Source: Iphione sp. A-MEVVRFRX5 (taxonomy: Eukaryota). From it: DNA of 64,000 nucleotides. Location of the stretch: assembly GCA_976226885.1 (NCBI GenBank), contig OZ320322.1:28582001-28646000 (forward strand). Reading direction: 5' to 3'. Shown here piece after piece: positions 1,402 through 64,000 of this stretch; within the stretch, counting starts at the first letter, position 1; each line of letters starts with the position of its first letter. A program made the translations under genes and the position numbers. The notes beneath the pieces were generated by a model, which searched no databases, was not told where the DNA came from, and saw only the letters and a program-made list of their open reading frames with translations.

Positions 1402-4400
1402 AGTATCTGGGAGTGGTCTTCCTGGCACTATAGCAACTTACAGATGCAGAGCTGGTTTCAGTCTTCAAGGCCTTGCCACAAGAACTTGTGGTGCCAATGG
1501 TGTCTATAGTGGCCAGATACCACAGTGTCTACGTAGGTTTTGTATATAATTTAGTATTCCTTTATTTCATTGATAATATTCAGAGTCTTTTTTAGTGAAG
1601 ACAATGTGTATTTTGTTGTATTTCAACTGGTTTGAACTACAAACATTAAGTAATTAATAATGAAAAGTAATATTCTAATGGAGTTGAATTTGGAAGAGAA
1701 TGATTTGCATTATATAATGAAAAAACTTATTGTAGATGTTTAGAGCATTAAATATAAAAAATGGTCCCCTCAGGTCAACTCCATATGGAAATGTTAAATT
1801 CTGTTTACAGAACTTAACTGCCCTCCACCCATTGCTCCTCTGAATGGCTTTGTTCAGTAAGTCTGGCAACCTTTGGTTATATAGAGAACTAAGGCTTCTA
1901 TCTACATGAGAGAAATTCTACTCATGATTATATAATGAGCAGCTTGTGTACCCTTGTGTATATCTTATAGAGTACTTACTGTAAAATCTAAGTACAACTA
2001 ATCTTCTTTCATAATATTTATGAAGATTATGCTGCTAGATTCCTCACCTTGATAACACTGCATATGCATCTTAGAATCATTCAGTCTGTCACACAAGATG
2101 AGTCAATGAAGACCTGCCTTTCATCAGTTTCTCGTAGTCTCATAAGTTTAATCTCTTTCTCCCCAGTTTCTCAAGTTATAGCCTAATATTTTAATAATCT
2201 CTTGAGAGATTTCAATTTGCATGAGGTATTCTTGAAAGAGAAAGTCAAATATATAATTATTCTCATAGTTTGATACACAATGGAAAAATGAGTAAAAACC
2301 TATATGGAAAAGACTTTATGAAACCAGGAACAGCTCTGACGGCATGAGTGGTTGTAGGTACATTGTTTTTCTTTTGGCAGTAAATAGTAAGAAGGACAGG
2401 TAAAGGTGACAAGAGAAGAGTAAGGATGTGAATGTGGGTGTCATGGAGATCATTAGGAGGGTTACAAGGGGATCTGTAAGATAATGCATTCAGAGGAACA
2501 GAACTTGTTCCATTATAATGAAAGTTGATGGAGCTATCAACGAACATTAGAAGGATGCTAAGAGAAGTATAAGATTATGGATTCAGGACACAAGAGTGCT
2601 AATAGATATAAGAAAGCAGGGTGATGGAGATAGTTCTCAGAATATGAACGTGAGCGTTGGGGTTGTCTGTGGGAATGTGGAGAATACTATGAGAGGAGTG
2701 AAGATGTGGTCACTGAGCACAGGTGTGTTAGTAGACACCAGAAGTTCCCTGAGGATGTGATTGCTGGGTGAGGCTGTTAGTAACAGAAAAATCAAAGCTA
2801 CTCACTTAAGTGTGCTCCTGGGATAACTGCATACAGAATGAAGTAGATAGTTTATCAAGGTGGTCCCTGGCAAAAATGTTCACTCTATTTGTATCCTCTC
2901 ATATTTGATTTATCTAGCTTGAACAGCTATTTCTAATCTAATACTAGTAATGCAGAGCAATTTCACACTTCTTCATACTTAATGTCATAATATGTAAGCT
3001 GTCATTGCTATTAAATACATCAAATACAACTAGGATAGTATTAAATGTTTTAATTCAACCTATAATTTAAAGTTTTATACTGGGAATAATCTGAGTGCAC
3101 AGCATTTGATTAGTTCTTCCTCTTATATTGTCTTGAAACTTTGGAGATTTTCTATGTAGGGATTTCATTACTAGTACATTCATGTGGTCTTAAGCTTATC
3201 ATCAGTGCTGGCATTGACACTCTGTGTGTTTCATAGTTATTTCTGTACCTGTGATAACCTTGCAGATGTCATAATGATGTTCCTGCCTATATATATATGC
3301 TTAATTGGTAGTACTGTAGTGATGATTATGACTTAGCATATGACCTCTACACACTATGGTAAACTATTCTAAATATGAATTTCATGAACACATATTATTT
3401 TTTGTAGAAAATGTGTGATGTTGTTACTTCCTTGCTTTCCTTGATAACTATTAGTCTAAGTTGGTTTGATATCTTATTTAATCACAGTTTTTTTACCTGT
3501 ATTGATGAATCCAAGCTCTCAGTTGTACTTTATTTCATTTATGTGGACAGAGTATCTGGGAGTGGTCTTCCTGGCACTATAGCAACTTACAGATGCAGAG
3601 CTGGTTTCAGTCTTCAAGGCCTTGCCACAAGAACTTGTGGTGCCAATGGTGTCTATAGTGGCCAGATACCACAGTGTCTACGTAGGTTTTGTATATAATT
3701 TAGTATTCCTTTATTTCATTGATAATATTCAGAGTCTTTTTTAGTGAAGACAATGTGTATTTTGTTGTATTTCAACTGGTTTGAACTACAAACATTAAGT
3801 AATTAATAATGAAAAGTAATATTCTAATGGAGTTGAATTTGGAAGAGAATGATTTGCATTATATAATGAAAAAACTTATTGTAGATGTTTAGAGCATTAA
3901 ATATAAAAAATGGTCCCCTCAGGTCAACTCCATATGGAAATGTTAAATTCTGTTTACAGAACTTAACTGCCCTCCACCCATTGCTCCTCTGAATGGCTTT
4001 GTTCAGTAAGTCTGGCAACCTTTGGTTATATAGAGAACTAAGGCTTCTATCTACATGAGAGAAATTCTACTCATGATTATATAATGAGCAGCTTGTGTAC
4101 CCTTGTGTATATCTTATAGAGTACTTACTGTAAAATCTAAGTACAACTAATCTTCTTTCATAATATTTATGAAGATTATGCTGCTAGATTCCTCACCTTG
4201 ATAACACTGCATATGCATCTTAGAATCATTCAGTCTGTCACACAAGATGAGTCAATGAAGACCTGCCTTTCATCAGTTTCTCGTAGTCTCATAAGTTTAA
4301 TCTCTTTCTCCCCAGTTTCTCAAGTTATAGCCTAATATTTTAATAATCTCTTGAGAGATTTCAATTTGCATGAGGTATTCTTGAAAGAGAAAGTCAAATA

Positions 4401-7400
4401 TATAATTATTCTCATAGTTTGATACACAATGGAAAAATGAGTAAAAACCTATATGGAAAAGACTTTATGAAACCAGGAACAGCTCTGACGGCATGAGTGG
4501 TTGTAGGTACATTGTTTTTCTTTTGGCAGTAAATAGTAAGAAGGACAGGTAAAGGTGACAAGAGAAGAGTAAGGATGTGAATGTGGGTGTCATGGAGATC
4601 ATTAGGAGGGTTACAAGGGGATCTGTAAGATAATGCATTCAGAGGAACAGAACTTGTTCCATTATAATGAAAGTTGATGGAGCTATCAACGAACATTAGA
4701 AGGATGCTAAGAGAAGTATAAGATTATGGATTCAGGACACAAGAGTGCTAATAGATATAAGAAAGCAGGGTGATGGAGATAGTTCTCAGAATATGAACGT
4801 GAGCATTGGGGTTGTCTGTGGGAATGTGGAGAATACTATGAGAGGAGTGAAGATGTGGTCACTGAGCACAGGTGTGTTAGTAGACACCAGAAGTTCCCTG
4901 AGGATGTGATTGCTGGGTGAGGCTGTTAGTAACAGAAAAATCAAAGCTACTCACTTAAGTGTGCTCCTGGGATAACTGCATACAGAATGAAGTAGATAGT
5001 TTATCAAGGTGGTCCCTGGCAAAAATGTTCACTCTATTTGTATCCTCTCATATTTGATTTATCTAGCTTGAACAGCTATTTCTAATCTAATACTAGTAAT
5101 GCAGAGCAATTTCACACTTCTTCATACTTAATGTCATAATATGTAAGCTGTCATTGCTATTAAATACATCAAATACAACTAGGATAGTATTAAATGTTTT
5201 AATTCAACCTATAATTTAAAGTTTTATACTGGGAATAATCTGAGTGCACAGCATTTGATTAGTTCTTCCTCCTATATTGTCTTGAAACTTTGGAGATTTT
5301 CTATGTAGGGATGTCATTATTTGGACATTCATGTGGTGTTAAGCTTATCATCAGTGCTGGCATTGACACTCTGTGTGTTTCATAGTTATTTCTGTACCTG
5401 TGATAACCTTGCAGATGTCATAATGATGTTCCCGCCTATATATATATGCTTAATTGGTAGTACTGTAGTGATGATTATCACTTAGCATACGACCTCTACA
5501 CACTATGGTAAACTATTCTAAATATGAATTTCATGAACACATATTATTTTTGTAGAGAATGTGTGATGTTGTTACTTCCTTGCTTTCCTTGATAACTATT
5601 AGTCTAAGTTGGTTTGATACCTTATTTAATCATAGTTTTTTATCTGTATTGATGAATCCAAGCTCTCAGTTGTACTTTATTTCATTTATGTGGACAGAGT
5701 ATCTGGGAGTGGTCTTCCTGGCACTATAGCAACTTACAGTTGCAGAGCTGGTTTCAGTCTTCAAGGCCTTGCCACAAGAACTTGTGGTGCCAATGGTGTC
5801 TATAGTGGCCAGATACCACAGTGTCTACGTAGGTTTTGTATATAATTTAGTATTCCTTTATTTCATTGATAATATTCAGAGTCTTTTTTAGTGAAGACAA
5901 TGTGTATTTTGTTGTATTTCAGCTGGTTTGAAGTAGAAATATTTAGTTATTTATAATGGAAGGCAATGTTCTAATGATTGCAATAGGATGACTTACATTA
6001 TAAATGAAGTGACTTACTGTAGATGTTTAGAGCATTAAATATAAAAAATGGTCCCCTCTGGTTGACTGCATATGGAAATGTTAAATTCTGTTTTACAGAA
6101 CTTAACTGCCCTCCACCCATTGCTCCTCTGAATGGCTTTGTTCAGTAAGTCTGGCAACCTTTGGTTATATAGAGAACTAAGGCTTCTATCTACATGAGAG
6201 AAATTCTACTCATGATTATAATAATGAGCAGCTTTTGTACCCTTGTGTATATCTTATAGAGTACTTACTGTAAAATCTAAGTACAACTAATCTTCTTTCA
6301 TAATATTTATGAAGATTATGCTGCTACATTCCTCACCTTGATAACACTGCATATGCATTTTAGAATCATTCAGTCTGTCACACAAGATGAGTCAATGAAG
6401 TCCTGCCTTTCATCGGTTTCTTGTAGTCTCATAAGTTTAATCTCTTTCTCCCCAGTTTCTCAAGTTATAGCCTAATATATGTTAATAATCTCTTGAGAGA
6501 TTTCAATTTGCATGAGGTATTCTTAAAAGAGAAAGTCAAATATATAATTATTCTCATAGTTTGATACACAATGGAAAAATGAGTAAAAACCTATATGGAA
6601 AAGACTTTATGAAACCAGGAACAGCTCTGACTGCAGGAGTGTTTATAGGTACATTGTTTTTCTTTTGGCAGTAAATAGTAGGAAGGACATATAAAGGTGA
6701 CAAGAGAAGAGTAAGGATGTGAATGTGGGTGTCATGGAGATCATTAGGAGGGTTACAAGGGGATCTCTAAGATAATGCATTCAGAGGAACAGAACTTGTT
6801 CCATTATGATGAAAATTGATGGAGCTGTCAACGAACATTAGAAGGATGCTAAGAGAAGTATAAGATTATGGATTCAGGACACAAGAGTGCTAATAGATAT
6901 AAGAAAGCAGGGTGATGGAGATAGTTCTTAGAACATGAATGTGAGCATTGGGGTTGTCTGTGGGAATGTGGAGAATACTATGAGAGGAGTGAAGATGTGG
7001 TCACTGAGCACAGGTGTGTTAGTAGACACCAGAAGTACCCTGAGGATGTGATTGCTGGGTGAGGCTGTTAGTAACAGAAAAATCAAAGCTACTCACTTAA
7101 GTGTGCTCCTGGGATAACTGCATACAGAATGAAATAGATAGTTTATCAAGGTAGTCACTAGCAAAATGTTCATTCTATTTGTATCCTCTCATATTTGTTT
7201 TGTCTAGCTTAAAAAAACTATTTCTGATCTAAGACTAGTAATGCAGAGCAATTTCACACTCCTCATACTTAATGTCATAATATGTGAGCTGTCATTGCTA
7301 TTAAATACATCAAATACAACTAGGATAGTATTAGATGTTTTAATTCAACCTATAATTTAAAGTTTTATATGGGCAATAATCTGAGTGCACAGCATTTGAT

Positions 7401-9657
7401 TAGTTCTTCCTCTCATATTGTCTTGAAACTGTGGAGATTTTCTGTGTAGGGATTTCATTATTTGGACATTCATGTGATCTTAAGCTTATCATCAGTGCTG
7501 GCATTTACACTCTGTGTGTTTCATAGTTATTTCTGTACCTGTGATAACCTTGCAGATGTCATAATGATGTTCCCGCCTATATATATATGCTTAATTGGTA
7601 GTACTGTAGTGATGATTATCACTTAGCATATGATCTCTATACACTATGGTAAACTATTCTAAATATGAATTTCATGAACACATATTATTTTTTTGTAGAG
7701 AATGTATGATGTTGTTACTTCCTTGCTTTCCTTGATAACTATTAGTCTAAGTTGGTTTGATATCTTATTTAATCATAGTTTTTTTATCTGTATTGCTGAA
7801 TCCAGGCTCTCAGTTGTACTTTATTTCATTTATGTGGACAGAGTATCTGGGAGTGGTCTTCCTGGCACTATAGCAACTTACAGTTGCAGAGCTGGTTTCA
7901 GTCTTCAAGGCCTTGCCACAAGAACTTGTGGTGCCAATGGTGTCTATAGTGGCCAGATACCACAGTGCCTTCGTAGGTTTTGTATATAATTTAGTATTCC
8001 TTTATTTCCTTGATAATATTCAGAGTCTTTTTTTGTGAAGACAATGTGTATTTTGTTGTATTTCAGCTGGTTTGAAGTAGAAATATTTCATAATTAATAA
8101 TGGAAGGCAATGTTCAAATGATTGCAAGAGGATGACTTACATTATTAAATAAGGAGTCCTATTGTTTACAGCATTAAATATATAAAATGGTCCCCTCAGG
8201 TTGACTGCATATGGAAATGTTAAATTCTGTTTTACAGAACTTAACTGCCCTTCACCCATTGCTCCTCTGAATGGCTTTGTTCAGTAAGTCTGGCAACCTT
8301 TGGTTATATAGAGAACTAAGGCTTCTATTTACATGAGAGAAATTCTACTCTTGATCATATAATGAGCAGCTTGTGTATCCTTTTATTTATCTCATAAGTT
8401 ACTTGCCATAATATCTAGGGACAACTGATCTTCTTTTATGATATTTATAAAGATTATGCTGCTACATTCTGCCCTTTGATAACTCTGCATTTGATTAATT
8501 CCGCCAAAAGATGTACCAGCGGTTTTCCCTGGGACTATTAAAAACTACAGGAAGAAATAATTTTATAGTGCTAAAAAAATTGTGACAGCTTCCTCATGAG
8601 CCCTAGACCAAGCCATAGCAAAAAAGAAGTAAAATATCAATTGAAATTTAATTTACACCGCAAAAACACCATCCCAGAGATTACATTTTGGTACATCTGT
8701 TGGTGGAATCAGTCATATGCATTTTAGAATCATTCAGTCTGTCACCCAAGATGAATCCATCTAGATCAGTCTTTGATTAGCTGCTAAAAGTCTAATAAAG
8801 ACAATCCCTTTCTTTCTTAGTTTGTCAAGTTATGGCTAAATATCTCAATGATCACTTGAAAAAATTCACTTGATATCTATTATTCTTGAAAGAGAAAGTG
8901 AAAATATGATTGTTCTCATTGTTCAATACACAACAGAAAAATGGGATTGCAGGGTGATGGAGATAGTTCCCAGAACCTGAAAGTGAGCTTTGGGTTGTCT
9001 GGGGGAATGTGGAGGATGCTAGGAGAGGTGTGAGAATATGATCAAAGAGTATAGGGGTGTTAGTAGGCACCAGAAGAACCCTGAGAGAAGTGTGATTGCT
9101 GGGTGAGGCAGTTAGTTACAGAAAAATGAAAGCTGCTGATTTGTCTGACAGATTCTCATCTTAGATTTCACAGGACTTATGTTTGCTCCTGGGATAACTG
9201 CATACAGAAGTGAAGTAGATAGTTCACCATGATGGCACCTGGCAAAATGTTCACTCTATTTGCATTCTCTTATATTTAATTTATCTACTTTAAACAGTCA
9301 TTTTCAATCTAGCACTAATAATGCAAAGCAATTTCATTCTTCCTTATAATTAATGTCATAATATGTATGTTATCTTTACTATAAAATACATCAAATACAA
9401 CTATGATTAGTATTAAATTTTTTACTTTAACCTACACTTTAATGTCTTAAAGTGGCAATAATCTGAGTACACAACAATTGATGAGTTCTTCCTCTTATAT
9501 TGTCTTGAAACTATGGCGAATTTCTATGCAGTGATTTCATTACTAGTATATTAATGTGCTTTTCAGCTTATCATCAGTGCTGGCATTTACACTCTGTGTG
9601 TTTCATAGTTATTTCTGTACCTGTGATAACCTTGCAGATGTCATAATGATGTTCCCG

Positions 9658-9690
<33 letters not shown>

Positions 9691-12600
9691 TTAATTGGTA
9701 GTACTGTAGTGATGATTATCACTTAGCATATGATCTCTATACACTATGGTAAACTATTCTAAATATGAATTTCATGAACACATATTATTTTTTTGTAGAT
9801 AATGTGTGATGTTGTTACTTCCTTGCTTTCCTTGATAACTATTAGTCTAAGTTGGTTCGATATCTTATTTAATCATGGGATTTTTAAAATATTGATGAAT
9901 ACAAGCTCTCAGTTGTACTTCATTTCATTCATGTGGACAGAGTATCTGGGAGTGGTCTTCCTGGCACTATAGCAACTTACAGTTGCAGAGCTGGTTTCAG
10001 TCTTCAAGGCCCTGCCACAAGAACTTGTGGGGCCAATGGTGTCTATAGTGGCCAGATGCCACAGTGCCTTCGTAGGTTTTGTATATAATTTAGTATTTCT
10101 TCATTTCCTTAGTAATATTAAGGGTGGTTCTTGTTTAACAAAGTGTTTTTTTGGTATTTCATCTGGTTTAAAGTAGAAATGTTAAGTAATTAGTAATGTC
10201 TGACCATGGTCCCATATAGTTGGTGTTGTCAGAGATGAATTTGCATTATTCTGAAATAGTTATCCTAGATGTAAAGATAAGACAATATATACAAATGTTC
10301 CCTTAGTTTTGCTCCATCTTAAAATTTTAACTTCTGTTTCACAGGACTTGGCTGTCCTAGACCTAATGCTCCTCAGAATGGTTTTGTGGAGTAAGTCTAG
10401 CAACTTTGGTCATACAGAGAGCTAAGGCTTCTATGTAAATTTGACTAATTCTATTCTTTATTACATAATAAAGAGCTTTGTATCCTGGTACATGATGTGC
10501 AATGCTATTGCCTTAAAATTGAAGGGCAGTTTTGCTTCTTCCATAATACCTCTGAAGGTTATACTGCTGCTTTCTGAAACCTTGATAACTCTACTGATGC
10601 ATTTTAGGATTGCTCAATCTGACACCTAAGATGAGTCCATCCAGATCACTCTTTGATCAGTACCTAGTAATTTGATGAAGAAAATCCCCTTTTTCTCTTG
10701 AGATTTATGGAGAAGAGCTACATCTCAAATAATAGCCTAGCTTCTCAGTGATTAAACTTAACATATCAATTCTTATAAAGCATTCTTGTCAGAGAAATTA
10801 TATAATTGTTCTCATAGTTAGTGCCATGCTATCAATGTGATTACTATTGTATTAAAGGTGAAAATAGGTAAGGTTAGTGAAATATCTTTTATTACACCTG
10901 AACTTTGCAGTTACAAATCGACATAATTATAGCAAAGCATTGTCATGCATCTGACATTTACAGCATTTGCTGAAGGCAGAGGACTTCTATGTCGTTATGT
11001 TCGTACGAGTATAGGGATATATTCTAAAGCTTGTCAGACATGCTGGTCTTTATATTCTTAATGTTCCATTATTATCCTTGTTACTGTGTAAAGATTGCAG
11101 ATGTTATAATAGTCTTGCTGTTCATATTTATGCTATTTTTAAGACAGTATTAAGTATACTTCTAAATTAAAACTTTTCATTTATAATATGAACTTTCTGT
11201 CCTTTAGTAAACTATTAATCTGACTTGGATTAATAACCGACTACTTCATGAGTTTTCTAATCATATTGATGAATTAGGGCTCTGCATTACATTTTATATC
11301 ATTCATATGGACAGAGTATCTGGGACTGGTCTTCCTGGCACTAAAGCAACTTACAGCTGCAGTGCTGGATTTGCCCTTCAAGGAAGTCCAAAAAGAATAT
11401 GTGGTGCCAATGGTGTCTATAGTGGCCAGATGCCACAGTGCATTCGTCTATCTACTGGTGATTAGATATTCTTCAATACAAATGTCAATGTGTAAAATCC
11501 CTCTCAATAAAGACCAAATCTTTTACTTTTGTTATGTAGGACTTGAAGGAGAAATTATTAGTGATTACTTATACAAAGACATTCTTTCATCAAGTTATTC
11601 TTGCAAGAGATTAACACATATTAATCTATGAAAGAAATCATTTCTTAAATTTAAAGCAGATGCAATGGTGAATGTTTACCAATACTGTACTTGTCCTTCA
11701 GTACTTTGAAATGTTAACTTATGTTTTACAGCAATTAACTGTCCTCGACCCAATCCTCCTGAAAATGGTATTGTTGAGTAAGTTTGGCAGTGTTTAGTTA
11801 TGTCTTTCAATGTAAAGTTCTAAATACAAAAACAAATTTTTCTTGAATTAGAGGGTAACATTATTCTGATTTACAATGCAAAAAGATGTTCCATTTTAGA
11901 CCATTATCTACAATACACTTGCCTCAATTAAAAATGTCACTTTGACCTTTCCCAAGATATAAATACATATGTATATATAAGGATCATCCTTTAACTTTCA
12001 AAACATCAATATCATTGCTCACATTTTCTTACTGTTAACTATGACTCCTAAGATGAATCAATGAAAATATTTGCTGGATCAGTGTGAAAGTTTTTTTATT
12101 ATGAAATCTCCCTCTTGTATGAAGATCTGTAACAAAGATGATCTCTGTAAAAGCTCAGTACCTCATTTACAACTTTCAACATATCACAGGTTTGAAAATA
12201 ACATTTGAAAGACAGGAGAAAAATTAGATTTGTGTCCTTTCTGATTAAAATAGTAATATACTACACGGCCTTATAAAACATGCTCATTTATTCAACCCAA
12301 TTGACTACTCTGACTATAAGTGCCACTTTTACTCAGTGACTACTTATTTACTACAGTATTATCTATCTTCATTATTACTAACACGATATGTGTCTAAGTA
12401 TTGCTACTTGAAGATAAAAGTACCTAGGATTATCATCAATTCTTTATCCTCTGACTTGAACATTCAAGTCATGCATTGGTAATAATCTCAGTACAGAGTT
12501 TCACTGGGACTCATTTTCATGGATTTGAGGAAAGGCAGACAATTTCTATGTATTTAGTTGAGAACTATTATGCTGATATATTATGGAATTTGTCAAGCAA

Positions 12601-15600
12601 ACTGGTCTTTATATACTTTACATTGTATTATTATTTTCTATAAATGTGATCAGATCTTAGAGTTTGTAGTAGTATTATTGCCTATGAATATGTTTTATTG
12701 AAAGTAATGCAGTATTTTAAATACTTCTTAAATGACCGTTTTCATTTTGAAGGAGACCTATACTCCCTGAAGCCAACACTTTTCAACATTTAGTGTGTAA
12801 TTTCTTATTGAATTCTTTGTGGAGAATTTGAGGACCTGTTAGGGTTTTTTTTCAACTATAGGTATTACTCTAACATATATTTTGTATACTTCTGAAGGGA
12901 AAACCTTGATTAAGAATATAACCTATACACTCTATAGTAAGCTGTTCTCAATATATAGTAGGTTATCTTATACTGATTTCTTTTGTGCAGAATCCAAGAA
13001 GCTGTTTTGTACAATCATAAGTCTTACTCTATGTTGCTTTGATAATTACTCTTTAATGATTTTGTAATCATATAAATGAATGAAGACTCTGAACTGTATA
13101 ACATTTTATTAATATGAACAGTATATCTGGGACTGGTCTTCCTGGCACTATAGCAACTTATCGCTGCAATGCTGGCTTCACCCTTCAAGGCAGTATCACA
13201 AGAATTTGTGGTGCCAATGGTGTCTATGATGGCCAGATGCCACGATGCCTTCGTAGGTTTCTGCATGATTTAGTATTCCTTCATTTCATTAGTAGTATTA
13301 ATACTCTTTCTCAATAAGAGCAAAGTGTATTATTTTTATGTTATTTGCTTAAAAGTAGATATACTAAGTAATTTATAATGTCTGGTCATGCCCTTTTACA
13401 GTTGTTGCTGCAAGAGATTAGCTGGCATTATATTTTAGAAATTGAAAACTTATCATTGATGTATAGAGCTGGCAGTATGTACAAATATTTCATCAGTTTC
13501 ACAGTATCTTGAAATTTGAAATTCTGTTTTACAGAAATTAACTGTCCTCCACCCAATGCTCCTCTGAATGGTGTGGTTGAGTAAGTTTGACAGGTTTAGA
13601 TGTGTATAGAGTCAAGGCTTTTGTCATTACTGAGAATAAAATGCCATAACTGCATAGCTGATAAAGTCATACTATTGAAAACTAATCTGTATTGTCATTG
13701 CCTTTAATCCACAAGGCAATTTGGCTTATCCAACCTTATTTTCACAAAGGTATCATCATCTTGAGTGAACATCTGTGAGTTTGCTTGCAAATTTCAGTAT
13801 TGTTCACTCAGGCTCCAGGTAACTTTTCCTATAGACTATCAATGTTCTTGATTTTGGTATCTTCATGATCATATACATAAATTGAATCTCATATCATTAC
13901 TTTAGTTTACATCAAGAAGTTCTGTTTCCCTCCATGCGATGTAAATTACTAATGCCACATTATCCTTGGTACCTCTGCACACGCTTATTTCATAGTTCTA
14001 CAGTAGTTCTGCATAACTGTGCAAGGATATCTATTATTCAGAATATAACCATTCTATATAATATAAACAATATCATTATATGAGGATGTTTTATGCAATA
14101 CTGATTGGTTTTAATAATTGAAAGAATTTGAGCCTTTCTTTCATCTATAGATACATCATGTGAGATTACTTCATGACATATAGCTTGTATCTTTTTGTAT
14201 TTACCTTACAGAATTTCTGTAAATTGATAAGAATTATCAACTATTTTGCATTCTATTGATATGAACAGAGTTTTGGGGAATAATCTCCCTGGCACAGCGG
14301 CAGTTTACAGCTGCAATACTGGCTTCACTCTGCTAGGAAATGCAAAAAGAATTTGTGGGCCCAATAGTGTTTATGGTGGCCAGATACCACAGTGCCGTCC
14401 TATATCTACTGGTGATAAAATATTCTTCAATACAAATCTCAATATGTAAAATTCCTCTTGATGAGACTAAATCTTTCAATGTTGTCATGTAGGAGAAATT
14501 ATCAGTGATTACTTATACAAAGACATTCTTTTCTCAAGTCATTCTTGCAAGAGATTAACACATATTAATCTATAAAAGAAATCATTTCCTAGTTTTAAAG
14601 CAGATGCAATGGTTAATGTTTACCAATACTGAACTTGTCCTTCAGTACTTTGAAATGTTAACTTATGTTTTACAGCAATTAACTGTCCTCGACCCAATCC
14701 TCCTGAAAATGGTATTGTTGAGTAAGTTTGGCAGTGTTTAGTTATGTCTTTCAATGTAAAGTTCTAAATATAAAAACAAATTTTTCTTGAATTAGAGGGT
14801 AACATTATTCTGATTTACAATGCAAAAAGATGTTCCATTTTGAAACCATTATCTACAATACACTTGCCTCAATTAAAAAATGTCTCTTTGACCTTTCCCA
14901 AGATATAAATATATATATAAGGATCATCTTTTTACTTTCAAAACATTAATATCATTGCTCACATTTTCTTACTGTTAACTATGACTCCTAAGATGAATCA
15001 ATGAAAATATTTGCTGGATCAGTGTGAAAGTTTTTTTATTATGAAATCTCCCTCCTGTATGAAGATCTGTAACAAAGATGATCTCTGTAAAAGCTCAGTA
15101 CCTCATTTACAACTTTCAACATATCACAGGTTTGAAAATAACATTTGAAAGACAGGAGGAAAATAAGATTTGTGTCCTTGCTGATTAAAATAGTAATATA
15201 TACTACACGACCTTATAAAACATGCTCATTTATTCAACCCAATTGACTACTCTGACTATAAGTGCCACTATTACTCAGTGATTACTTATATACTACAGTA
15301 TTATCTATCTTCATTATTACTAACATGGTATGTGTCTAAGTATTGCTACTTGAAGATAAAAGTACCTAGGATTATCATCAATTCTTTATCCTCTGACTTG
15401 AACATTCAAGTCATGCATTGGTAATGATCTCAGTACAGAGTTTCACTGAAACTCATTTTCATAGATTTGGGGAGAGGCAGACAATTTCTATGTATTTAGT
15501 TGAGAACTATTATGCTGATATATTATGGAACTTGTCAGGGAAACTGGTCTTTATATACTTTATATTGTGTTATTATTTCTATAAATATGATCATATCTTA

Positions 15601-47800: not shown

Positions 47801-50800
47801 TGCGTTCCTTACCTGCGTTCGGGTTGGAGGCCAACTGCGGTATGACGGCAACCCTCCAGTATGTGTCGGTGAGTAAGATAAACAGAAGTTTCATAATTTC
47901 GGCAGTTTTCACAAGTATGACAGTGTACTCCGCTCTTTGTTTTATCGCCCAAAAGGGCGCCACCCTATACTATTGTTCAGTTCTAGGGGTAGTGTGAGTG
48001 TCCACTGAGACTTAGCAATCTGGGTACAGTTAAAGCAAATATTTTATTGAAGTTCTGTGTTAAAAATATATTACGTGAGTTATTTATATTAACATACGTC
48101 ATTACCCCTTTCAGGGCCATGAGAACGGCAATAGGGCTGTGGTATGCATAAATGCGCTCTCGTTTTAGGGCCAGGTATACATTTATGCATAAACAAAATA
48201 TTCTTTAGAAATTCAACTAACCACATTACTGCTCCGAAATATTATTTACTCTGAGCAGATGAACAGTTCTCTTCATGATGTGACTAAAAAGGAGTTATAG
48301 CAAGGTAATTAGAGACATAATCTTACCTTCAAAGCATTCTGTAGTCCTTCAAATAATGAGCCAAACCTTTTACTCTTTGCTTGAGAGAATGATCGTTAAA
48401 ACGTTAACAGAGCTAGTTTGGGTACATTATATGATAACTGAGTAATAATGTTTCATAGATCCTTACCAACCGTATTGTGTCTAGAAGATTTTAATCAATA
48501 AAGACAGGTCATTTGGCCATGTCCTATTGTGTTATCTCTGTTACACACACATTCACACACATATATACATGCATATATCTATACATTTATGCATGCTGTA
48601 TGTACTGGAGACTTGGGATTCTTCTTCATTTTGGGAGTTAAGCTAAATCCATTCAGGAGGAAGGCCATACATACAGTCAAGCCTATGTCAGCTGGATTTC
48701 TGGTCACTGAGGACCGTAGGTCGTCAGCGCGGAACTAGTAGCTCGACCTTTATTGCCCTACGCATCACCCAAAGGTGGTTAGGATTAACCACTATGCACA
48801 GAAATTCGGTTGACAATATCAATGTAGTAAAACTATTACAGGGCTATGCGCATCTAGAATCCGCTGTGATATGGTTTATTCCGTGAGCTGGGTAAAGATA
48901 TGTGCTGTTACAATGATAACAGCCTCAGAGTGGCAGGAATCCGGTATTGCGGGGCCAGTTGTCGTTGGCTGACTGTTTATATTTATATACACAGAGATAG
49001 GCCTAGGGGAATGATTAAGTAACGGTAAGTAATTAATTTCATGGAATAATCATCCAGATAACTATACCAATGTATGCAAAGGTACAAGACGTGTTGGCTC
49101 TGGGCCCATGGGCCTGGAGACCGACCCCTGCTCTATGTTCATGCTCCTGCACTTCGATGCTAATCAAGTAGACCAACCGAAGAAACCCCCCTGATAGAGA
49201 ACAAAAGTGGTGAGTTAAGGCTCACCTGTTACACTGCAGTGCTATCTTGCTGACTGCTAGCGAGTTTGTGCTCAAAGGAGTCTTAACCCCACTAGGCAAT
49301 GCCACCTACCGTAGCCTTAGGGGTTATTATATTTGCCTAATCTGCTGCTGTACTTCAGCCTTCGTATAACTGTACCAAAATAAGAAGAGCGCACCAGTAT
49401 ATGTGTTGGTCGAACGCCTATAGGCCCGGATGCTTACACCTCAAGACCAAACAAACTGGAGTCTCGATGGGGGCACCTGTCCTGTCGCAGAAGGAAACCG
49501 GTTTACTTGACCTCAAGCCTTTAGTTCATGATTTTAGAAAGATGACTGTTTGCCATTCAGCGAGAGTGCCCGCCTGCTATTTCTCAGTAGAGCTCGGTGC
49601 CCTGATTGCTCAGTTCTCACTGCTAAAGAGCAGCTCTTTGAGACTTTTTACGTTAGAATACCACTTTCCAAGGGTATCATACAACTTGGTATAACAAAGA
49701 CACATCTGTAGATAGGGTTTTTTAAGAGTTCTTAAGCATCTGTGGGATTTAATTGCTACTACCCCACGCTCTACTCCATTAGCGTTCAATATGACAGTAC
49801 ATCAGGCAACATTTGTGAGTCTTCCTTACTGGCCTGTTTAACATTCACGTCTGCACACCTCCAAGGATGCTTCCTTCTTGCATCCTTGTGATGTACAAGA
49901 ATCATTCCAATGTTTTGTTAACCCCCTAAGCATAGCAGTATGCTCTGCACCCAGGTGAATGTTCTCTGCCTTACAAGCCACTGCCACATCGTAAGGGAGA
50001 ATACCACATGGTGGCCCTAGTAGGAAGGTGGTGCTCATATTTGGCTGGCTGTTTGCCAGAATATCGACGTTGATAACCTTGTCTGCCATATACCTGAATT
50101 GGACCGAGTAGTGGTTCACGCCCCAATTCCCCTTAGCTAGGGTATCTGTCGTGTACCAGCAGCTGTACACCAGCTCTCCATGATGACTTGTCTGTCAAAT
50201 AATACACTCTTGTGTCCTCCATTGTTGTGACCACTTTTCCCCCCTTCTGGTGTTTGGTACGGGCCGCTATCGGCACCAGGTCCATATTCTATGACTGTTT
50301 GCTGTCTGTCCACTAGCTGGCTTGCTCGACCTTCCCGAGCGACTACTCCAGCAGCTGTTGCTGGTACAACTGGGTAATCCCCAACTGTTGCTAGTCTTTT
50401 TTTGGCGAACTTTGGGCCTGTCATGCCCATCACTGCTTGGAGGTAAGTGGGGATTCCTGCTAAGTCCGCCCTCTCTAACTGAGTCCTGATCACCAAAGAC
50501 AACAAAACTTGTCGCTTACTGCTCGGCTGGTATCCGTGTCTCTGTCACTGCTGCAACCATGATCCCTGATTCCCCTGTTTCTTCCACTTACTCTAGCATC
50601 TTAGTCCGGGCTGCCATTTGTACACCTGGGCCACAGCTCAGGTGTTAACCGTGTAAATGTCCGCAACCCCGTTGCTTTGGACGTTCAGCCCGTTGCTAGC
50701 TGTGCCATTCAAGTGTTCTGTCTGCTTTCTGAATCTAAAACTTCTTGTCGACGCTTTAAGCGCAGCATTTCCCGATCCTCTTCTTCTTCCTCCGTATCCA

Positions 50801-62589: not shown

Positions 62590-63650
62590 CGTGCGTGCGC
62601 GTTGTTGTTAGTCTGCCGGATCCCCTCTTTGACAATAGAGACAACGGAGCCGGTTTGAAGATCGACGCCTTCATCCTGCATGTGGCAGAGCATTCTAATA
62701 TGCAATGGTTTTCAAACATGGCCATCTAACGCATCCTTGCACACGAATACACCGAACCCTCACACAGCCATTCATTCACTTTCTTCCACGAAAAATACAT
62801 TTAAAGTATGGCATTGATGAATCGGAATTGATTCTGATTGTGTAAACCATCGGTTTTAAAACTGCAAGACATGATATATGCGCGAGAATGACTGTGTCCT
62901 TTCTCTTTGTCTCGGTGTTCGGAATGGATCTGTCTGTGTCTTTGTTTGTCCGTCTTTCTGTCTTTCTGCATGTGTATGTGTGTATGTATGTACGTACGTA
63001 CGTACGCACGTCTGGTGGACTGGACGTGATAATGACAAGGTGTGGACTGCACCAGTCGCCTGCCGACTGGCCTTGACACGTTGGCTGACCTACCCCCGGA
63101 GTCAGACACGGCCTATGAGTCTTCCTTCACTCTGCCATGCCCGTTCGGCGCCACCCCAGCGAACGTGACGGTGACTTGCAGGGCCTCCGGTTTATGGGGC
63201 TTTTCCGACAGCTGCCGTAGTAAGTGCCCCTATGCACCGTGCCTCTGCCTCCAACAACTCGTTAATTCAGATATTGTGCCATTCTGGAGCCAAAACCGTC
63301 TACATAGGTGAAAATGGGTCTAAGTTCGTTTCGATACTCAGATTCTTCGTATTCTAATTCGGTTAAGCATTCGTACATCGATATCTCAAGGTAGCATGCA
63401 CCTTGTGTGGCTGGACCATTCAGGTGCGATTTGCCCCACGTGTAGAACATCCCTCGTGATTAGACGTTGTTCGGTGACTTGCCATAAATCATAGCCCTGT
63501 TTACAGATGCGCCAGCTTGCCCGGTACGTGAGAATCCCCCTATCCCGTGTGGAAACATGCCCGACCTGTGTACTGATAACATTCAATGTCGGTTCACTCA
63601 GCGGTGCTGCTTTGACGGCTGCCGCCGGACCTGCTCGCCGGCCGATCCGG
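1402..63650 (+). CDS. Partial multi-exon gene (no start or stop in window) for a large modular extracellular protein: Sushi x16 - Kunitz - Sushi x18 - Kunitz - Sushi x2 - WAP; about 2310 aa in window
   Basis: 69 hand-derived AG/GT exons join without an in-frame stop (6932 nt = 1+3x2310+1): 1402-1532, 1811-1856, 3551-3681, 3960-4005, 5698-5828, 6099-6144, 7842-7972, 8238-8283, 9941-10071, 10345-10390, 11315-11457, 11732-11777, 13122-13252, 13535-13580, 14269-14411, 14676-14721, 16128-16258, 16568(or 16556)-16613, 17410-17540, 17771-17816, 25150-25280, 25537-25582, 26724-26854, 28291-28336, 29125-29255, 29388-29433, 30059-30189, 30766-30811, 31531-31661, 32555-32600, 33055-33185, 34602-34772, 36231-36282, 36532-36662, 37418-37469, 37652-37782, 38209-38260, 38504-38634, 39190-39241, 39866-39996, 40466-40517, 40791-40921, 41372-41423, 41681-41811, 42275-42326, 42599-42729, 43589-43643, 43801-43931, 44552-44603, 44784-44914, 45350-45401, 45630-45760, 46346-46531, 47518-47563, 47732-47868, 51627-51672, 52247-52386, 53055-53234, 53683-53728, 55246-55376, 55785-55961, 57082-57130, 57924-58039, 59509-59682, 60073-60255, 61382-61430, 62389-62522, 63040-63219, 63507-63650. 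Joining them into a single transcript is inferred; there are no RNA data. Confidence 0.88.
8492..8715. mobile_element. 224-bp MITE with 26-bp imperfect TIRs, present in one repeat unit only
   Basis: TGATTAATTCCGCCAAAAGATGTACC vs the reverse complement of GGTACATCTGTTGGTGGAATCAGTCA match at 22/26. Sister units show the empty site ctgcatatgc (e.g. about 2058-2067). Confidence 0.8.
9660..9688. repeat. (TA)n microsatellite, expanded in one repeat unit
   Basis: About 14 TA units here versus about 5 at the homologous position in sister units (e.g. about 1139-1149). Confidence 0.95.
11446..16258 (+). repeat. Higher-order duplication of a two-Sushi cassette (about 11446-13252 vs about 14400-16258)
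   Basis: Short exons 11732 and 14676 are identical. Introns 11778-13121 and 14722-16127 are collinear and highly similar. The offset is 2944 bp, rising to 3006 bp after a local indel near 16020-16090. Confidence 0.92.
20050..20460. repeat. Degenerate 70-90-bp tandem repeat, about 5 units
   Basis: Core GTGTTTGTAGAGGG..GATGTCCCCACACCTGCAGGAG recurs at about 20077, 20157, 20229, 20319 and 20390. Confidence 0.85.
20557..20662 (-). repeat. Ngaro split direct repeat B2 (106 bp core)
   Basis: Identical to 20870-20975. Similarity extends with 2 mismatches to the CATT at 20546. Confidence 0.97.
20731..20862 (-). repeat. Ngaro split direct repeat A2 (132 bp)
   Basis: Identical to 24281-24412. Confidence 0.97.
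20870..20975 (-). repeat. Ngaro split direct repeat B1 (106 bp core)
   Basis: Identical to 20557-20662. Confidence 0.97.
20985..21935 (-). pseudogene. Ngaro tyrosine recombinase interrupted by an in-frame TGA at 21501-21503
   Basis: FYTGF*QSEL (expected G.LR.SE), then KWSKT, HSLRRTGA and GNWSSNAYYNY. The two track ORFs are in the same frame on either side of one TGA. Confidence 0.93.
21969..23852 (-). pseudogene. Ngaro pol (reverse transcriptase + RNase H) with one frameshift at about 23385-23388
   Basis: N-terminal part LNIEAW..LLQYGFPIGY..NHPSATDFP switches frame to QHVSEYIRNEI..GPF. RT motifs RRIITDMS, DIARAYKN, PFGARCSS, YLDD, WLG are present. RNase H motifs VDAC, IEAVN and ADALSR are present, but the expected cDN reads CNN. 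Confidence 0.92.
23807..23859 (-). promoter_or_regulatory. Putative -1 ribosomal frameshift signal (A AAA AAC + 5-nt spacer + stem-loop) at the gag/pol overlap
   Basis: The heptamer at 23859-23853 is correctly phased in gag, and a -1 shift enters the open pol frame. GGCACCTCTG (23847-23838) pairs with CAGAGGTACC (23816-23807) at 9 of 10 positions. Confidence 0.65.
23847..24275 (-). pseudogene. Ngaro gag, C-terminal part only (Cys/His zinc-finger region)
   Basis: Contains W..Y.FD...RNEISW and VCQAYSMAPC...HICSFC...HNHTLSVC. It abuts A1 directly and has no in-frame ATG upstream, so the 5' gag is probably deleted. Confidence 0.75.
24281..24412 (-). repeat. Ngaro split direct repeat A1 (132 bp)
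   Basis: Identical to 20731-20862. Confidence 0.97.
24849..25032. mobile_element. Degenerate Tc1/pogo-like MITE remnant with internal 14-bp inverted repeat
   Basis: AACTAGGGACACCC (24865-24878) and GGGTGTCCCTAGTT (24910-24923) form a perfect inverted repeat. The right end reads ..AAGGTCCTACTG. Ends are approximate. Confidence 0.45.
25150..33185 (+). CDS. Six more diverged split-exon Sushi domains (long exons 25150, 26724, 29125, 30059, 31531, 33055; short exons 25537, 28291, 29388, 30766, 32555)
   Basis: Example: CAPPTRPANGAIR/VNGGGVLGSTVDYNCNTGFELRGPRTRTCTATGAYDGQDPVC. Same 46+131-nt exon geometry and phases as array A. Confidence 0.9.
25944..26283. mobile_element. PIF/Harbinger-type (Tourist-like) MITE, copy 1
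   Basis: Ends GGCCTAAA..TGTGTTTCCGGTAAC and GTTACCGGAAACACA..TTTAGGCC, flanked by a TAA duplication (25941-25943, 26284-26286). Confidence 0.85.
27061..27661. mobile_element. 601-bp PIF/Harbinger-type MITE with internal minisatellites
   Basis: TIR GGCCCGGTTTCCTTAC(A/C)TGC matches at 19/20, with TTA target duplication (27058-27060, 27662-27664). Internally there is an approximately 62-bp x2 repeat plus cagtcaaaa and ccccaatgca repeats. Confidence 0.87.
28525..28735. repeat. 31-bp minisatellite with palindromic core CAGGCAAATTTGCCTG
   Basis: Cores at 28525, 28556, 28587, 28618 and 28649, decaying to about 28735. Confidence 0.85.
34602..34772 (+). CDS. Kunitz/BPTI domain exon 1 (six Cys, P1 = Phe)
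   Basis: LRCLQRRDEGPCFQFLRRYFFNPLTRRCEQFIYGGCRGNLNRFRDIRECQRICAGT has canonical Kunitz Cys spacing and FIYGGC.GN.N.F. Phase 1-1 exon with ctag/GTATAA sites. Confidence 0.95.
35519..35856. mobile_element. PIF/Harbinger-type MITE, copy 2 (same family as 25944-26283)
   Basis: TAA-GGCCCTAAAA..TGTGTTTCC ... GTTACCGGAAACACAGC..TTAGGCC-TAA. The interior is similar to copy 1 and in the same orientation. Confidence 0.82.
36231..42729 (+). CDS. Sushi array B: 7 tandem units (52-nt + 131-nt exons)
   Basis: Consensus MTDSCPSVSNPLNGRVL/VEGVVLPGTIVEFACDAGYQLQGPSSILCLLNLVYNDDPPSC. Acceptors c/tacag and catag, donors GTAAGT. Confidence 0.92.
43589..45760 (+). CDS. Three split-exon Sushi domains (43589/43801, 44552/44784, 45350/45630)
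   Basis: Example: CPDVAAPVNGNRQ/ITGDRLPSSTVQFSCNEGYLLLGPTAIVCMLNFQYNQDPPIC. Phases are consistent. Confidence 0.88.
46346..46531 (+). CDS. Single-exon (unsplit) Sushi domain
   Basis: LDCGPLPTLPNVMGTWPQGTSTRYLATYSLLCQRGFLPEYVTAFCNATGMWEVSDTC; phase 1-1, ggcag/GTGAGC. Confidence 0.85.
47518..47868 (+). CDS. Split Sushi domain (47518-47563 + 47732-47868)
   Basis: CPPVRTPDRGSQR/QEGTGVNSRVVFSCDPGLQLQGPAFLTCVRVGGQLRYDGNPPVC. Confidence 0.87.
51627..52386 (+). CDS. Split Sushi domain (51627-51672 + 52247-52386)
   Basis: CPPVNTDRPLLQQ/SSSQGEIGSQIFFSCEQGFILVGPNVINCRLIQGRAQYDSPPPQC. Confidence 0.85.
53055..53234 (+). CDS. Single-exon (unsplit) divergent Sushi domain
   Basis: IDCGPLPAVANAADDWPENPARSHRDTHSVRCQPISSNVVISATCNEQGRWLLNGSC; phase 1-1, donor GTCAGC is weak. 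Confidence 0.78.
53683..55376 (+). CDS. Split Sushi domain (53683-53728 + 55246-55376)
   Basis: CQTLRTPRNGRFT/FLQGTGDLGSVARFECDRGYTLNGQATITCQENGWTGNEPVC. Confidence 0.88.
55785..55961 (+). CDS. Single-exon (unsplit) Sushi domain
   Basis: VDCGNELPVANIVGGNVADGQTSYQAVIRRQCLDGFMPETIVFTCTERAVWVTDQQC; gcag/GTAAGT. Confidence 0.85.
57082..58039 (+). CDS. Split Sushi domain (57082-57130 + 57924-58039)
   Basis: CPRINLPDQAVMQ/LVDEVIIEFSCNPGFDMLGPGRIICRNGTWTNQPPVC. Confidence 0.85.
59509..59682 (+). CDS. Single-exon (unsplit) Sushi domain
   Basis: VDCGPFPEQPNVVNPPSTPVTTFPVTYIFTCRSGLTPETYTVVCGEDGVWRPRGQC; donor GTTTCA is weak. Confidence 0.8.
60073..60255 (+). CDS. Kunitz domain exon 2, four-Cys (two-disulfide) variant
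   Basis: ICGFRMDAGMGDASLSRYYYNATAGTCLQFTYRGSGGNGNNFRDLLECQRTCAFT keeps C5, C30, C51, C55 and the Y..N, F.Y.G..GN.NNF motifs (BPTI numbering). C14 is Gly and C38 is Ser. Confidence 0.9.
61382..62522 (+). CDS. Split Sushi domain (61382-61430 + 62389-62522)
   Basis: CPMLSTPANGNRN/VLSGDGRPQTVVEFSCNPGYRLVGSQRLTCLSNFAWDFPQPTC. Confidence 0.88.
61969..62285. repeat. Degenerate minisatellite of about 30 bp (core AGATGAGACCTAGTT)
   Basis: About 10 imperfect copies of gatgagacc-like motifs. Confidence 0.7.
62543..62600. repeat. (TG)n followed by (TGCG)n microsatellite
   Basis: Seen directly just downstream of exon 62389-62522. Confidence 0.95.
63040..63219 (+). CDS. Single-exon (unsplit) Sushi domain
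   Basis: VDCTSRLPTGLDTLADLPPESDTAYESSFTLPCPFGATPANVTVTCRASGLWGFSDSC; acaag/GTAAGT. Confidence 0.82.
63507..63650 (+). CDS. WAP (four-disulfide core) domain exon, not translated in the ORF track
   Basis: APACPVRENPPIPCGNMPDLCTDNIQCRFTQRCCFDGCRRTCSPADP has 8 Cys in WAP spacing (CP..C..C.....C.....CC..GC...C). Sites tttacag/GTAATC, phase 1-1. Confidence 0.88.
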
Positions 63651-64000
63651 GTAATCGTTATAGATTCACCACCAAGGCTGCTGCACTTCCGTGTCGTCGT
63701 TGAGCCCACCACTTTTCACTCGCAGCCAAATGTTCAAGTGGTAATCGCACTTGATTTTTGACTCTCGCCCCATCCACTTTGATGTTTCTCCCAGTTGCAT
63801 TTTCAACAGGTGTTTTTTTTTACACATGCAGTCGTGACTTTACTCTTGATGCCTTCGCCCTTCAATCCTGTCGTGATACTGAAACGTTCATTCCACCATC
63901 CGGTGAAAAGATGTGTGTGTTTTATTTATATTTTGGTCTCACTTTAATCACCACCTGTGCTCCGAACTTCCCGTGTCCAATTTAGAGGTAGAGCGTATCC

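Follow-up and report, generated by a model that had tools for sequence, protein, structure and literature searches.

Why should a very large protein assembled from extracellular-type domains hold on to its arginine (Arg) and yet contain almost no lysine (Lys) or histidine (His)? The question is raised by a predicted gene on the + strand of a 64,000-nucleotide stretch of DNA from Iphione sp. A-MEVVRFRX5 (NCBI GenBank assembly GCA_976226885.1, contig OZ320322.1, positions 28,582,001 to 28,646,000 of the forward strand). This stretch is referred to below as the window, and its positions are numbered from its first letter. A first-pass annotation, made from the letters of the window, had noticed a chain of Sushi, Kunitz and WAP domains almost devoid of Lys and had proposed selection against primary amines. 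We rebuilt the gene independently, and the strong depletion of Lys with retention of Arg was recovered. In addition, His is purged as strongly as Lys, a point absent from that annotation. Selection at the level of the protein against both residues is well supported by the tests described below, and a tentative explanation of its purpose is weighed against several rivals.

The predicted gene

The exons were rebuilt from cysteine patterns, AG/GT splice sites and intron phases, and were placed by simple splice-site scores plus phase rules. The window contains no runs of N, and its + strand carries a long run of short open segments with Sushi-like Cys spacing. When joined, 71 phase-compatible exons between 1402 and 63650 (7295 nucleotides, nt) give a model of 2431 codons without an in-frame stop. 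These comprise 31 B exons, 30 A exons, seven single-exon (phase 1-1) Sushi-like units referred to as F-type, two Kunitz exons and one WAP exon. In a two-exon Sushi module, the A exon (46 nt in the first repeat unit) runs from phase 1 to phase 2 and codes for Cys1 and a P..NG motif, and the B exon (131 nt in the same unit) runs from phase 2 to phase 1 and codes for Cys2 to Cys4. The domains follow one another in the order 16 Sushi, Kunitz, 20 Sushi, Kunitz, two Sushi, WAP; that is, 38 Sushi/CCP domains, two Kunitz domains and one WAP domain, or about 41 small disulfide-bonded modules. The first-pass annotation had 69 exons and about 2300 residues, and the difference from the rebuild, which is itself partial, lies in 20 rather than 18 Sushi domains between the two Kunitz domains.

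Read in this way, the window appears to hold most of one very large + strand gene, with the model open at both ends. The chain opens at the window edge, at 1402, with a B exon that codes for the rear half of a domain; its A exon partner falls before the window, so that the gene start would lie further upstream. At the other end, the WAP exon closes at a GGTAAT donor without a stop codon; reading through this donor, the frame reaches a stop at 63701 and gains one Lys. Splicing, a single transcript and expression are predicted from the logic of the sequence, and secretion, hence the word 'extracellular', from the domain types. No public sequencing runs were listed for a 4.7-kb 3' stretch (runs of any kind) or for an exon-dense 1.8-kb stretch (RNA runs). 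That the gene is a live one is supported by its 2431 open codons together with the ratios of nonsynonymous to synonymous change (dN/dS) in the second of its two tandem Sushi arrays, which range pairwise from 0.10 to 0.61 among seven paralogous domains and indicate coding constraint. In the first array, dN/dS is about 0.5-1.0.

Exons that might have been overlooked were also sought. The 150 best-scoring multi-Sushi proteins of an exhaustive profile search, compared with the window by tblastn, revealed no further Sushi-coding segments outside the modelled exons on either strand. In a scan of GC-rich islands for hidden exons, the non-exon islands proved to be retroelement, repeats, or sequence inside mid-Sushi phase-2 introns, and none was accepted as an exon. 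An upstream acceptor in the first array (e.g., 1339; 21 additional residues, one of them Lys) was rejected, as it is not conserved among the units and would break the Sushi fold. The other alternative acceptor sites add no Lys.

Loss of lysine and histidine

The model contains 4 Lys, 139 Arg, 5 His and 15 tryptophan (Trp) residues. Arg makes up 5.7% of the protein, and the overall charge is near neutral (158 D+E vs 143 K+R). The longest run without Lys is 1122 residues, the longest without His 936, and the longest without either 513. A lysine desert has been defined as a Lys-free stretch of at least 150 residues (Szulc et al., PMC10665810), and by this definition the model contains one. All three Lys reported earlier, at 11343, 11391 and 14345, were found again. 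Exon 44185-44367, probably missed in the first-pass annotation, contributes a fourth (AAG at 44253); the hand count of Arg in that annotation was about 133.

For comparison of composition, the same 150 multi-Sushi proteins were used. Relative to them the model stands at the 1st percentile for Lys, the 5th for His, the 3rd for Trp (0.62%) and the 5th for Ser, and at the 97th for Pro, Gln (5.5%) and Leu, with Arg at the 85th. With a K/(K+R) of 0.028 (median 0.43), the model ranks second lowest among the 151 proteins. Glu is also lowered (2.6% vs a median of 5.2%). The exons have a GC content of 51% and the introns one of 37.6%; thus, the earlier statement that the arrays are AT-rich holds for the introns and not for the exons.

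Selection at the level of the protein

A protein may be poor in a residue by chance, because of the base composition of its gene, because certain DNA motifs are avoided, or because a single unusual module has been copied many times. Given the position-specific base composition of the exons themselves, about 49 Lys would be expected, compared with the 4 seen, and translation of the intron sequence gives 5.1% Lys in all three frames. AAR triplets, which code for Lys, occur 4 times in frame, whereas the two shifted frames of these exons hold 60 and 73; for CAY triplets, which code for His, the corresponding counts are 5 in frame and 92 and 114 in the shifted frames. Avoidance of A-rich triplets at the DNA level is ruled out by the 60-73 AAR in the shifted frames. 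Since the absence of AAR and CAY is confined to the reading frame, the avoidance acts on the protein and not on the DNA, and the frame counts together with the intron Lys content leave neither DNA composition nor the avoidance of motifs as an explanation.

The earlier view that the depletion is not just an effect of tandem copying was upheld. The 37 complete Sushi modules have a median pairwise identity of 33%. When they were de-replicated by single-linkage clustering at 60% identity, with one module kept per cluster, 22 modules (1299 residues) remained, containing 3 Lys, 79 Arg and 4 His (P ~8e-14 against an expectation of 3% Lys). A minimum spanning tree of the 37 modules holds 852 amino-acid differences, with Arg involved in 122, Lys in 8 and His in 3. 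Among the possible nonsynonymous single-base changes, 4-5% would yield Lys and about 5% His, and 538 codons sit one step from Lys; the use of Lys among the paralogue differences is therefore about 10-fold too low. The same holds in the first array, where, at a dN/dS of about 0.5-1.0, many replacements have been accepted but almost never to Lys or His.

A position-matched control was provided by 4020 homologous half-Sushi segments from the 150 proteins. They average 0.99 Lys and 0.53 His each, which predicts about 31 Lys and about 16 His for the 31 B parts of the model, against the 3 and 0 observed. As the query profile is itself without Lys, the comparison errs on the conservative side. The depletion also extends beyond Sushi, as the first-pass annotation had stated: both Kunitz domains are free of Lys, and the WAP domain has QRCC in place of the usual KCC. 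Kunitz 1 shares 52% identity with Kunitz-1 of human TFPI, and the five Lys of the latter align with R, F, R, Q and R. The open reading frames (ORFs) of an intronic retroelement contain about 3% Lys and 3-5% His, ordinary levels for both residues; these are two transposon ORFs only and are silent on the secreted proteins of the species.

Taken together, the tests give good support for selection on the protein against both Lys and His. The selection against Lys proposed earlier draws its support from the frame-specific absence of AAR, the under-use of Lys among the 852 differences and the residues found at the TFPI Lys positions.

Domains and organization of the locus

The assignment of the B exons to Sushi follows from Pfam PF00084, to which 1403-1531 and 36533-36661 score 31.4 and 32.1 bits, respectively (cut-off 20.7; profile positions 21-56). 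Taken singly, the F-type exons gave no match in Pfam at E <= 0.01, and comparison of their profile with the B-exon profile by hhalign reached a probability of only 37%. A search of PDB with the F-type profile retrieved solved CCP modules, namely those in beta2-glycoprotein I, MASP-2, Crry and factor H (E ~1e-5), and this match identifies the F-type exons as CCP modules. All 37 complete Sushi modules have the four Cys. The consensus Sushi Trp between Cys3 and Cys4 is Tyr in most of the two-exon modules (e.g., 1402-1532 and 36532-36662) and is retained in the F-type and the last few two-exon modules.

Kunitz 1 and Kunitz 2 match Pfam PF00014 with 73 and 63.8 bits, respectively; the second lacks the Cys at positions 14 and 38 and thus has one disulfide fewer. 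Neither looks like a trypsin-inhibitor-type Kunitz domain, and at P1 Kunitz 1 carries Phe, against Lys in TFPI Kunitz-1. The WAP exon scores 25.5 bits against Pfam PF00095 (cut-off 20.8), and no solved structure matched it by sequence.

From 5' to 3', the parts of the predicted gene are as follows.

1402-17540, + strand: Sushi array 1, ten CCP domains, each of an A exon of 46 nt and a B exon of 131 or 143 nt
B exon starts in array 1, + strand: 1402, 3551, 5698, 7842, 9941, 11315, 13122, 14269, 16128, 17410
A exon starts in array 1, + strand: 1811, 3960, 6099, 8238, 10345, 11732, 13535, 14676, 16568
11315-11457, + strand: Lys-bearing B exon of array 1, 143 nt, AAA at 11343 and 11391
14269-14411, + strand: Lys-bearing B exon of array 1, 143 nt, AAA at 14345, homologous by alignment to position 11391
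17771-33185, + strand: six diverged two-exon Sushi domains (numbers 11-16), no Lys and no His
A exon starts of Sushi 11-16, + strand: 17771, 25537, 28291, 29388, 30766, 32555
B exon starts of Sushi 11-16, + strand: 25150, 26724, 29125, 30059, 31531, 33055
34602-34772, + strand: Kunitz 1, single phase 1-1 exon, six Cys, P1 Phe, 12 Arg, no Lys
36231-42729, + strand: Sushi array 2, seven CCP domains of two exons each (A 52 nt, B 131 nt), spacing about 0.9-1.3 kb
43200-59682, + strand: thirteen Sushi domains, single-exon F-type mixed with two-exon
F-type starts in this block, + strand: 43200, 44185, 46346, 53055, 55785, 59509
Two-exon A/B starts in this block, + strand: 43589/43801, 44552/44784, 45350/45630, 47518/47732, 51627/52247, 53683/55246, 57082/57924
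44185-44367, + strand: F-type Sushi exon with one His and the fourth Lys (AAG at 44253), 51% identity to its paralogue, exon 43200-43379
60073-60255, + strand: Kunitz 2, single exon, four of the six canonical Cys, 6 Arg, no Lys
61382-63219, + strand: last two Sushi domains, one two-exon (61382-61430/62389-62522) and one F-type (63040-63219)
63507-63650, + strand: WAP four-disulfide-core exon, eight Cys including the central CC, QRCC in place of the usual KCC

The first five units of array 1 are nearly identical and follow each other at a spacing of about 2.15 kb. Between 43200 and 63219, single-exon Sushi domains (CGP.P motif, Trp kept) alternate with two-exon modules, and this alternation suggests an older two-domain repeat unit, distinct from the arrays of 46+131 cassettes.

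Introns and mobile elements

The first intron of the Sushi 11-16 block, between exons 17771-17816 and 25150-25280, is 7.3 kb long and holds a GC-rich retrotransposon:

20653-24597, - strand: retrotransposon, not part of the protein

Its ORFs code for a reverse transcriptase (21969-23495, PF00078) and a tyrosine recombinase (20985-21491, PF00589), a combination by which the element is classed as DIRS-like. The nearest public reverse transcriptases are only 49% identical. Another mobile element is possibly represented by 48610-51192, a GC-richer block of 2.5 kb with long Lys- and Cys-rich open frames, which lies in the 3.8-kb intron between 47732-47868 and 51627-51672.

In each array 1 unit the long intron contains a GC-richer island of about 200 bp (463-674, 2612-2823, 4784-4972, 6931-7114 and 8915-9123), open on both strands. 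These islands are probably not exons, since they sit in the mid-Sushi phase-2 intron. Two tandem arrays with a 31-nt period, 27219-27358 (with a 62-nt super-period) and 28514-28675, flank exon 28291-28336, the first of them in the intron that separates it from 26724-26854. A (TG)n microsatellite (62523-62600) starts within about 20 nt past the donor of exon 62389-62522.

Lysine-poor relatives

Relatives were sought by the exhaustive profile search mentioned above, which covered 1.84 billion representative sequences. It returned no orthologue, the best alignment being 30% identical, and none of the top 150 multi-Sushi proteins has a Kunitz module. No protein resembling Kunitz 1 was found among short proteins, the range covered by that search, from which long annotated proteins are excluded. 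About 12 of the 150 are Lys-poor (<0.75%), and these come from amphioxus, ascidians and a sponge. For example, Branchiostoma belcheri XP_019630654.1 has no Lys in 1545 residues, and Clavelina lepadiformis CAK8697585.1 has 3 Lys and 1 His in 1283 residues; the others include two proteins of Ciona savignyi, one of Sycon ciliatum and further ones of amphioxus. The group is His-poor as well (0.45% vs 1.91%, P = 9e-7) and also Glu-poor; it is low in Arg and rich in Thr and Ala. Judged from these sequences, the trait itself is not unique, and the Arg-retaining form with inhibitor modules appears to be.

A proposed explanation and its rivals

We propose that the protein is a long CCP stalk bearing domains of protease-inhibitor type (Kunitz and WAP), and that purifying selection has removed nearly all Lys and His, the side chains with a reactive, titratable nitrogen. 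Arg retains the positive charge, and Gln and Asn occupy the polar positions. Without epsilon-amines and imidazoles, the protein may escape covalent capture or cross-linking in the extracellular fluid or matrix, whether by quinones, aldehydes, transglutaminase, hypohalous oxidants or activated thioester proteins (C3/TEP/alpha-2-macroglobulin class). In this way it would stay mobile and functional while its surroundings are cross-linked or attacked. Because His has been purged too, a cause connected with reactive or titratable side-chain nitrogen is favored over a purely Lys-specific one. Chemical inertness is therefore the purpose that we prefer for the loss of Lys and His, although we hold it at somewhat less than even confidence.

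Several points weigh against such inertness. Met, the residue most sensitive to hypohalous oxidants, is not depleted (1.23% vs a median of 1.14% in the 150 proteins), and the hydroxyls of Ser, Thr and Tyr remain, so that thioester proteins that attack hydroxyls could still attach. Vertebrate CCP regulators act beside thioesters with a normal Lys content. The other Lys-poor Sushi proteins, with their low Arg and Glu and high Thr and Ala, may represent a different, low-charge regime. Finally, the model is incomplete at both ends.

Several rival explanations have to be weighed against chemical inertness. It may be that charge constancy was selected: a protein charged through Arg, Asp and Glu only would keep its charge from acidic granules to alkaline or calcifying fluids, and might bind sulfate or phosphate more tightly. 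Lys (pKa ~10.5) and His (pKa ~6) titrate within the biologically reachable pH range and Arg does not, which accounts for the joint loss of the first two with the third kept, and the near-neutral balance of 158 acidic and 143 basic residues fits as well. Lys-poor, Arg-rich proteins are known to work at high pH, for example, the activated Bacillus thuringiensis Cry toxins, which act in the midgut of caterpillars. However, a strongly alkaline compartment is not indicated for this animal, Lys stays protonated at seawater pH so that little would clearly be gained by its removal, and the lowered Glu is not predicted; we consider this explanation unlikely. Much the same standing, an improbable one, is given to a strictly Lys-directed cause with an unrelated loss of His, such as escape from cross-linking by transglutaminase or lysyl oxidase, from a Lys-specific protease, or from extracellular ubiquitylation, which is known from a sperm receptor on the egg coat of an ascidian. 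Arg replaces Lys at homologous positions of the Kunitz domain, Gln, the acyl donor of transglutaminase, is enriched to the 97th percentile, and LOXL1 offers a precedent (PMC10169902). But the purge of His is equally strong and equally frame-specific, and the 139 Arg can still be cut by trypsin-like enzymes.

The loss could also be non-adaptive, if a founder Sushi cassette happened to be without Lys and His and was then copied, its composition being maintained by concerted evolution and fold constraints. Much of the protein does consist of tandem duplicates, with array 1 nearly identical and array 2 made of close paralogues. Yet the median identity of the Sushi modules is low, three unrelated folds (Sushi, Kunitz and WAP) share the trait, and the accepted differences include almost no Lys or His in spite of the many codons one step from Lys, which makes a founder effect very unlikely. 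Equally small is the chance that the extreme value partly reflects a transcript model that is incomplete or wrong, in that unseen exons are normal in Lys or more than one gene is spanned. Neither end of the exon chain, which is predicted from sequence logic, is closed, and GC-rich islands that could be exons occur in several introns of 1.4-3.8 kb. Against this, the tblastn comparison aligned nothing outside the modelled exons on either strand, every domain is complete as modelled so that an extra exon would be a linker, and alternative acceptors add no Lys except at the one non-conserved site in array 1. Even 20 additional Lys would leave the protein below 1% Lys; gaps in the model might make the figures less extreme but would not abolish the depletion.

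The case is of interest beyond this gene. Extracellular lysine deserts are more numerous than the explained intracellular ones and have been noted without explanation, and among them the present example is unusually clean: it comprises more than 2400 residues in folded, disulfide-bonded domains belonging to three families, its AT-rich genomic setting leaves no room for an appeal to GC bias, and the frame-specific loss that extends to His narrows the causes to those that act on reactive or titratable nitrogen. We further speculate, with considerable doubt, that CCP arrays lacking Lys and His, with examples in this gene and in amphioxus, ascidians and a sponge, form a distinct functional class of marine-invertebrate proteins that is invisible to nucleophile-seeking extracellular chemistry, of which the present gene would be the extreme, Arg-retaining form with Kunitz and WAP warheads. 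Members of such a class might, for example, be regulators or carriers of inhibitors that act beside activated thioester proteins or in quinone- or aldehyde-cured matrices and are never covalently trapped. If a class of uncross-linkable matrix or immune regulators does exist, it would offer a design principle for inert protein scaffolds.

Comparison with known systems

The best-scoring proteins of the profile search are SVEP1-like and CSMD-like invertebrate proteins (e.g., Branchiostoma floridae XP_035675655.1 and B. belcheri XP_019630654.1). Like the model, they are long chains of 25-78 CCP domains, and some of them are nearly without Lys and His. They differ in that their 25-30% identity to the model is generic Sushi similarity and that they have no Kunitz domain; moreover, the Lys-poor ones contain little Arg and much Thr and Ala, in contrast to the model with its 5.7% Arg. 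SVEP1 is marked by VWA, EGF and pentraxin domains and CSMD by alternating CUB and Sushi domains, and neither arrangement occurs within the window: no VWA, EGF, pentraxin or CUB domain was seen there, and the tblastn comparison with the 150 proteins aligned over the Sushi B exons only.

Multidomain inhibitors that combine Kunitz and WAP domains (WFIKKN, eppin and papilin), together with TFPI, resemble the model in carrying Kunitz and/or WAP domains in secreted proteins. In the model, however, no follistatin/Kazal, Ig, NTR, TSP1 or PLAC domain was seen, and the inhibitor modules sit within a stalk made up of 38 Sushi domains.

Strong depletion of Lys with retention of Arg is also known from the A chains of AB toxins and from activated Bacillus thuringiensis Cry toxins. 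The accepted reasons are that AB toxins evade ubiquitylation in the host cytosol and that Cry toxins work in the alkaline midgut. The model resembles these toxins in being Lys-poor with Arg kept and, as its domain types suggest, in acting outside the producing cell. It differs from them in having no toxin domain, and their accepted reasons are not obviously applicable to a CCP array.

A further framework is that of lysine deserts. No literature on Lys-free Sushi proteins was found. Lysine deserts have been studied for intracellular proteins of the ubiquitin system (Szulc et al. 2023, PMC10665810; 2026 review, PMC13696103). The longest human ones belong mostly to extracellular-matrix or plasma-membrane proteins (Kampmeyer et al. 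2023, PMC10169902), and for these the authors held that some other mechanism has to be at work; they put forward the avoidance of modification or cross-linking through Lys, with LOXL1 as an example. The model shares with such deserts long Lys-free stretches that are partly offset by Arg. The deserts studied so far lie mostly in disordered regions of intracellular ubiquitin-system proteins, whereas the Lys loss described here affects three families of folded modules with disulfide bonds, occurs where the surrounding DNA is AT-rich, and goes together with the loss of His.

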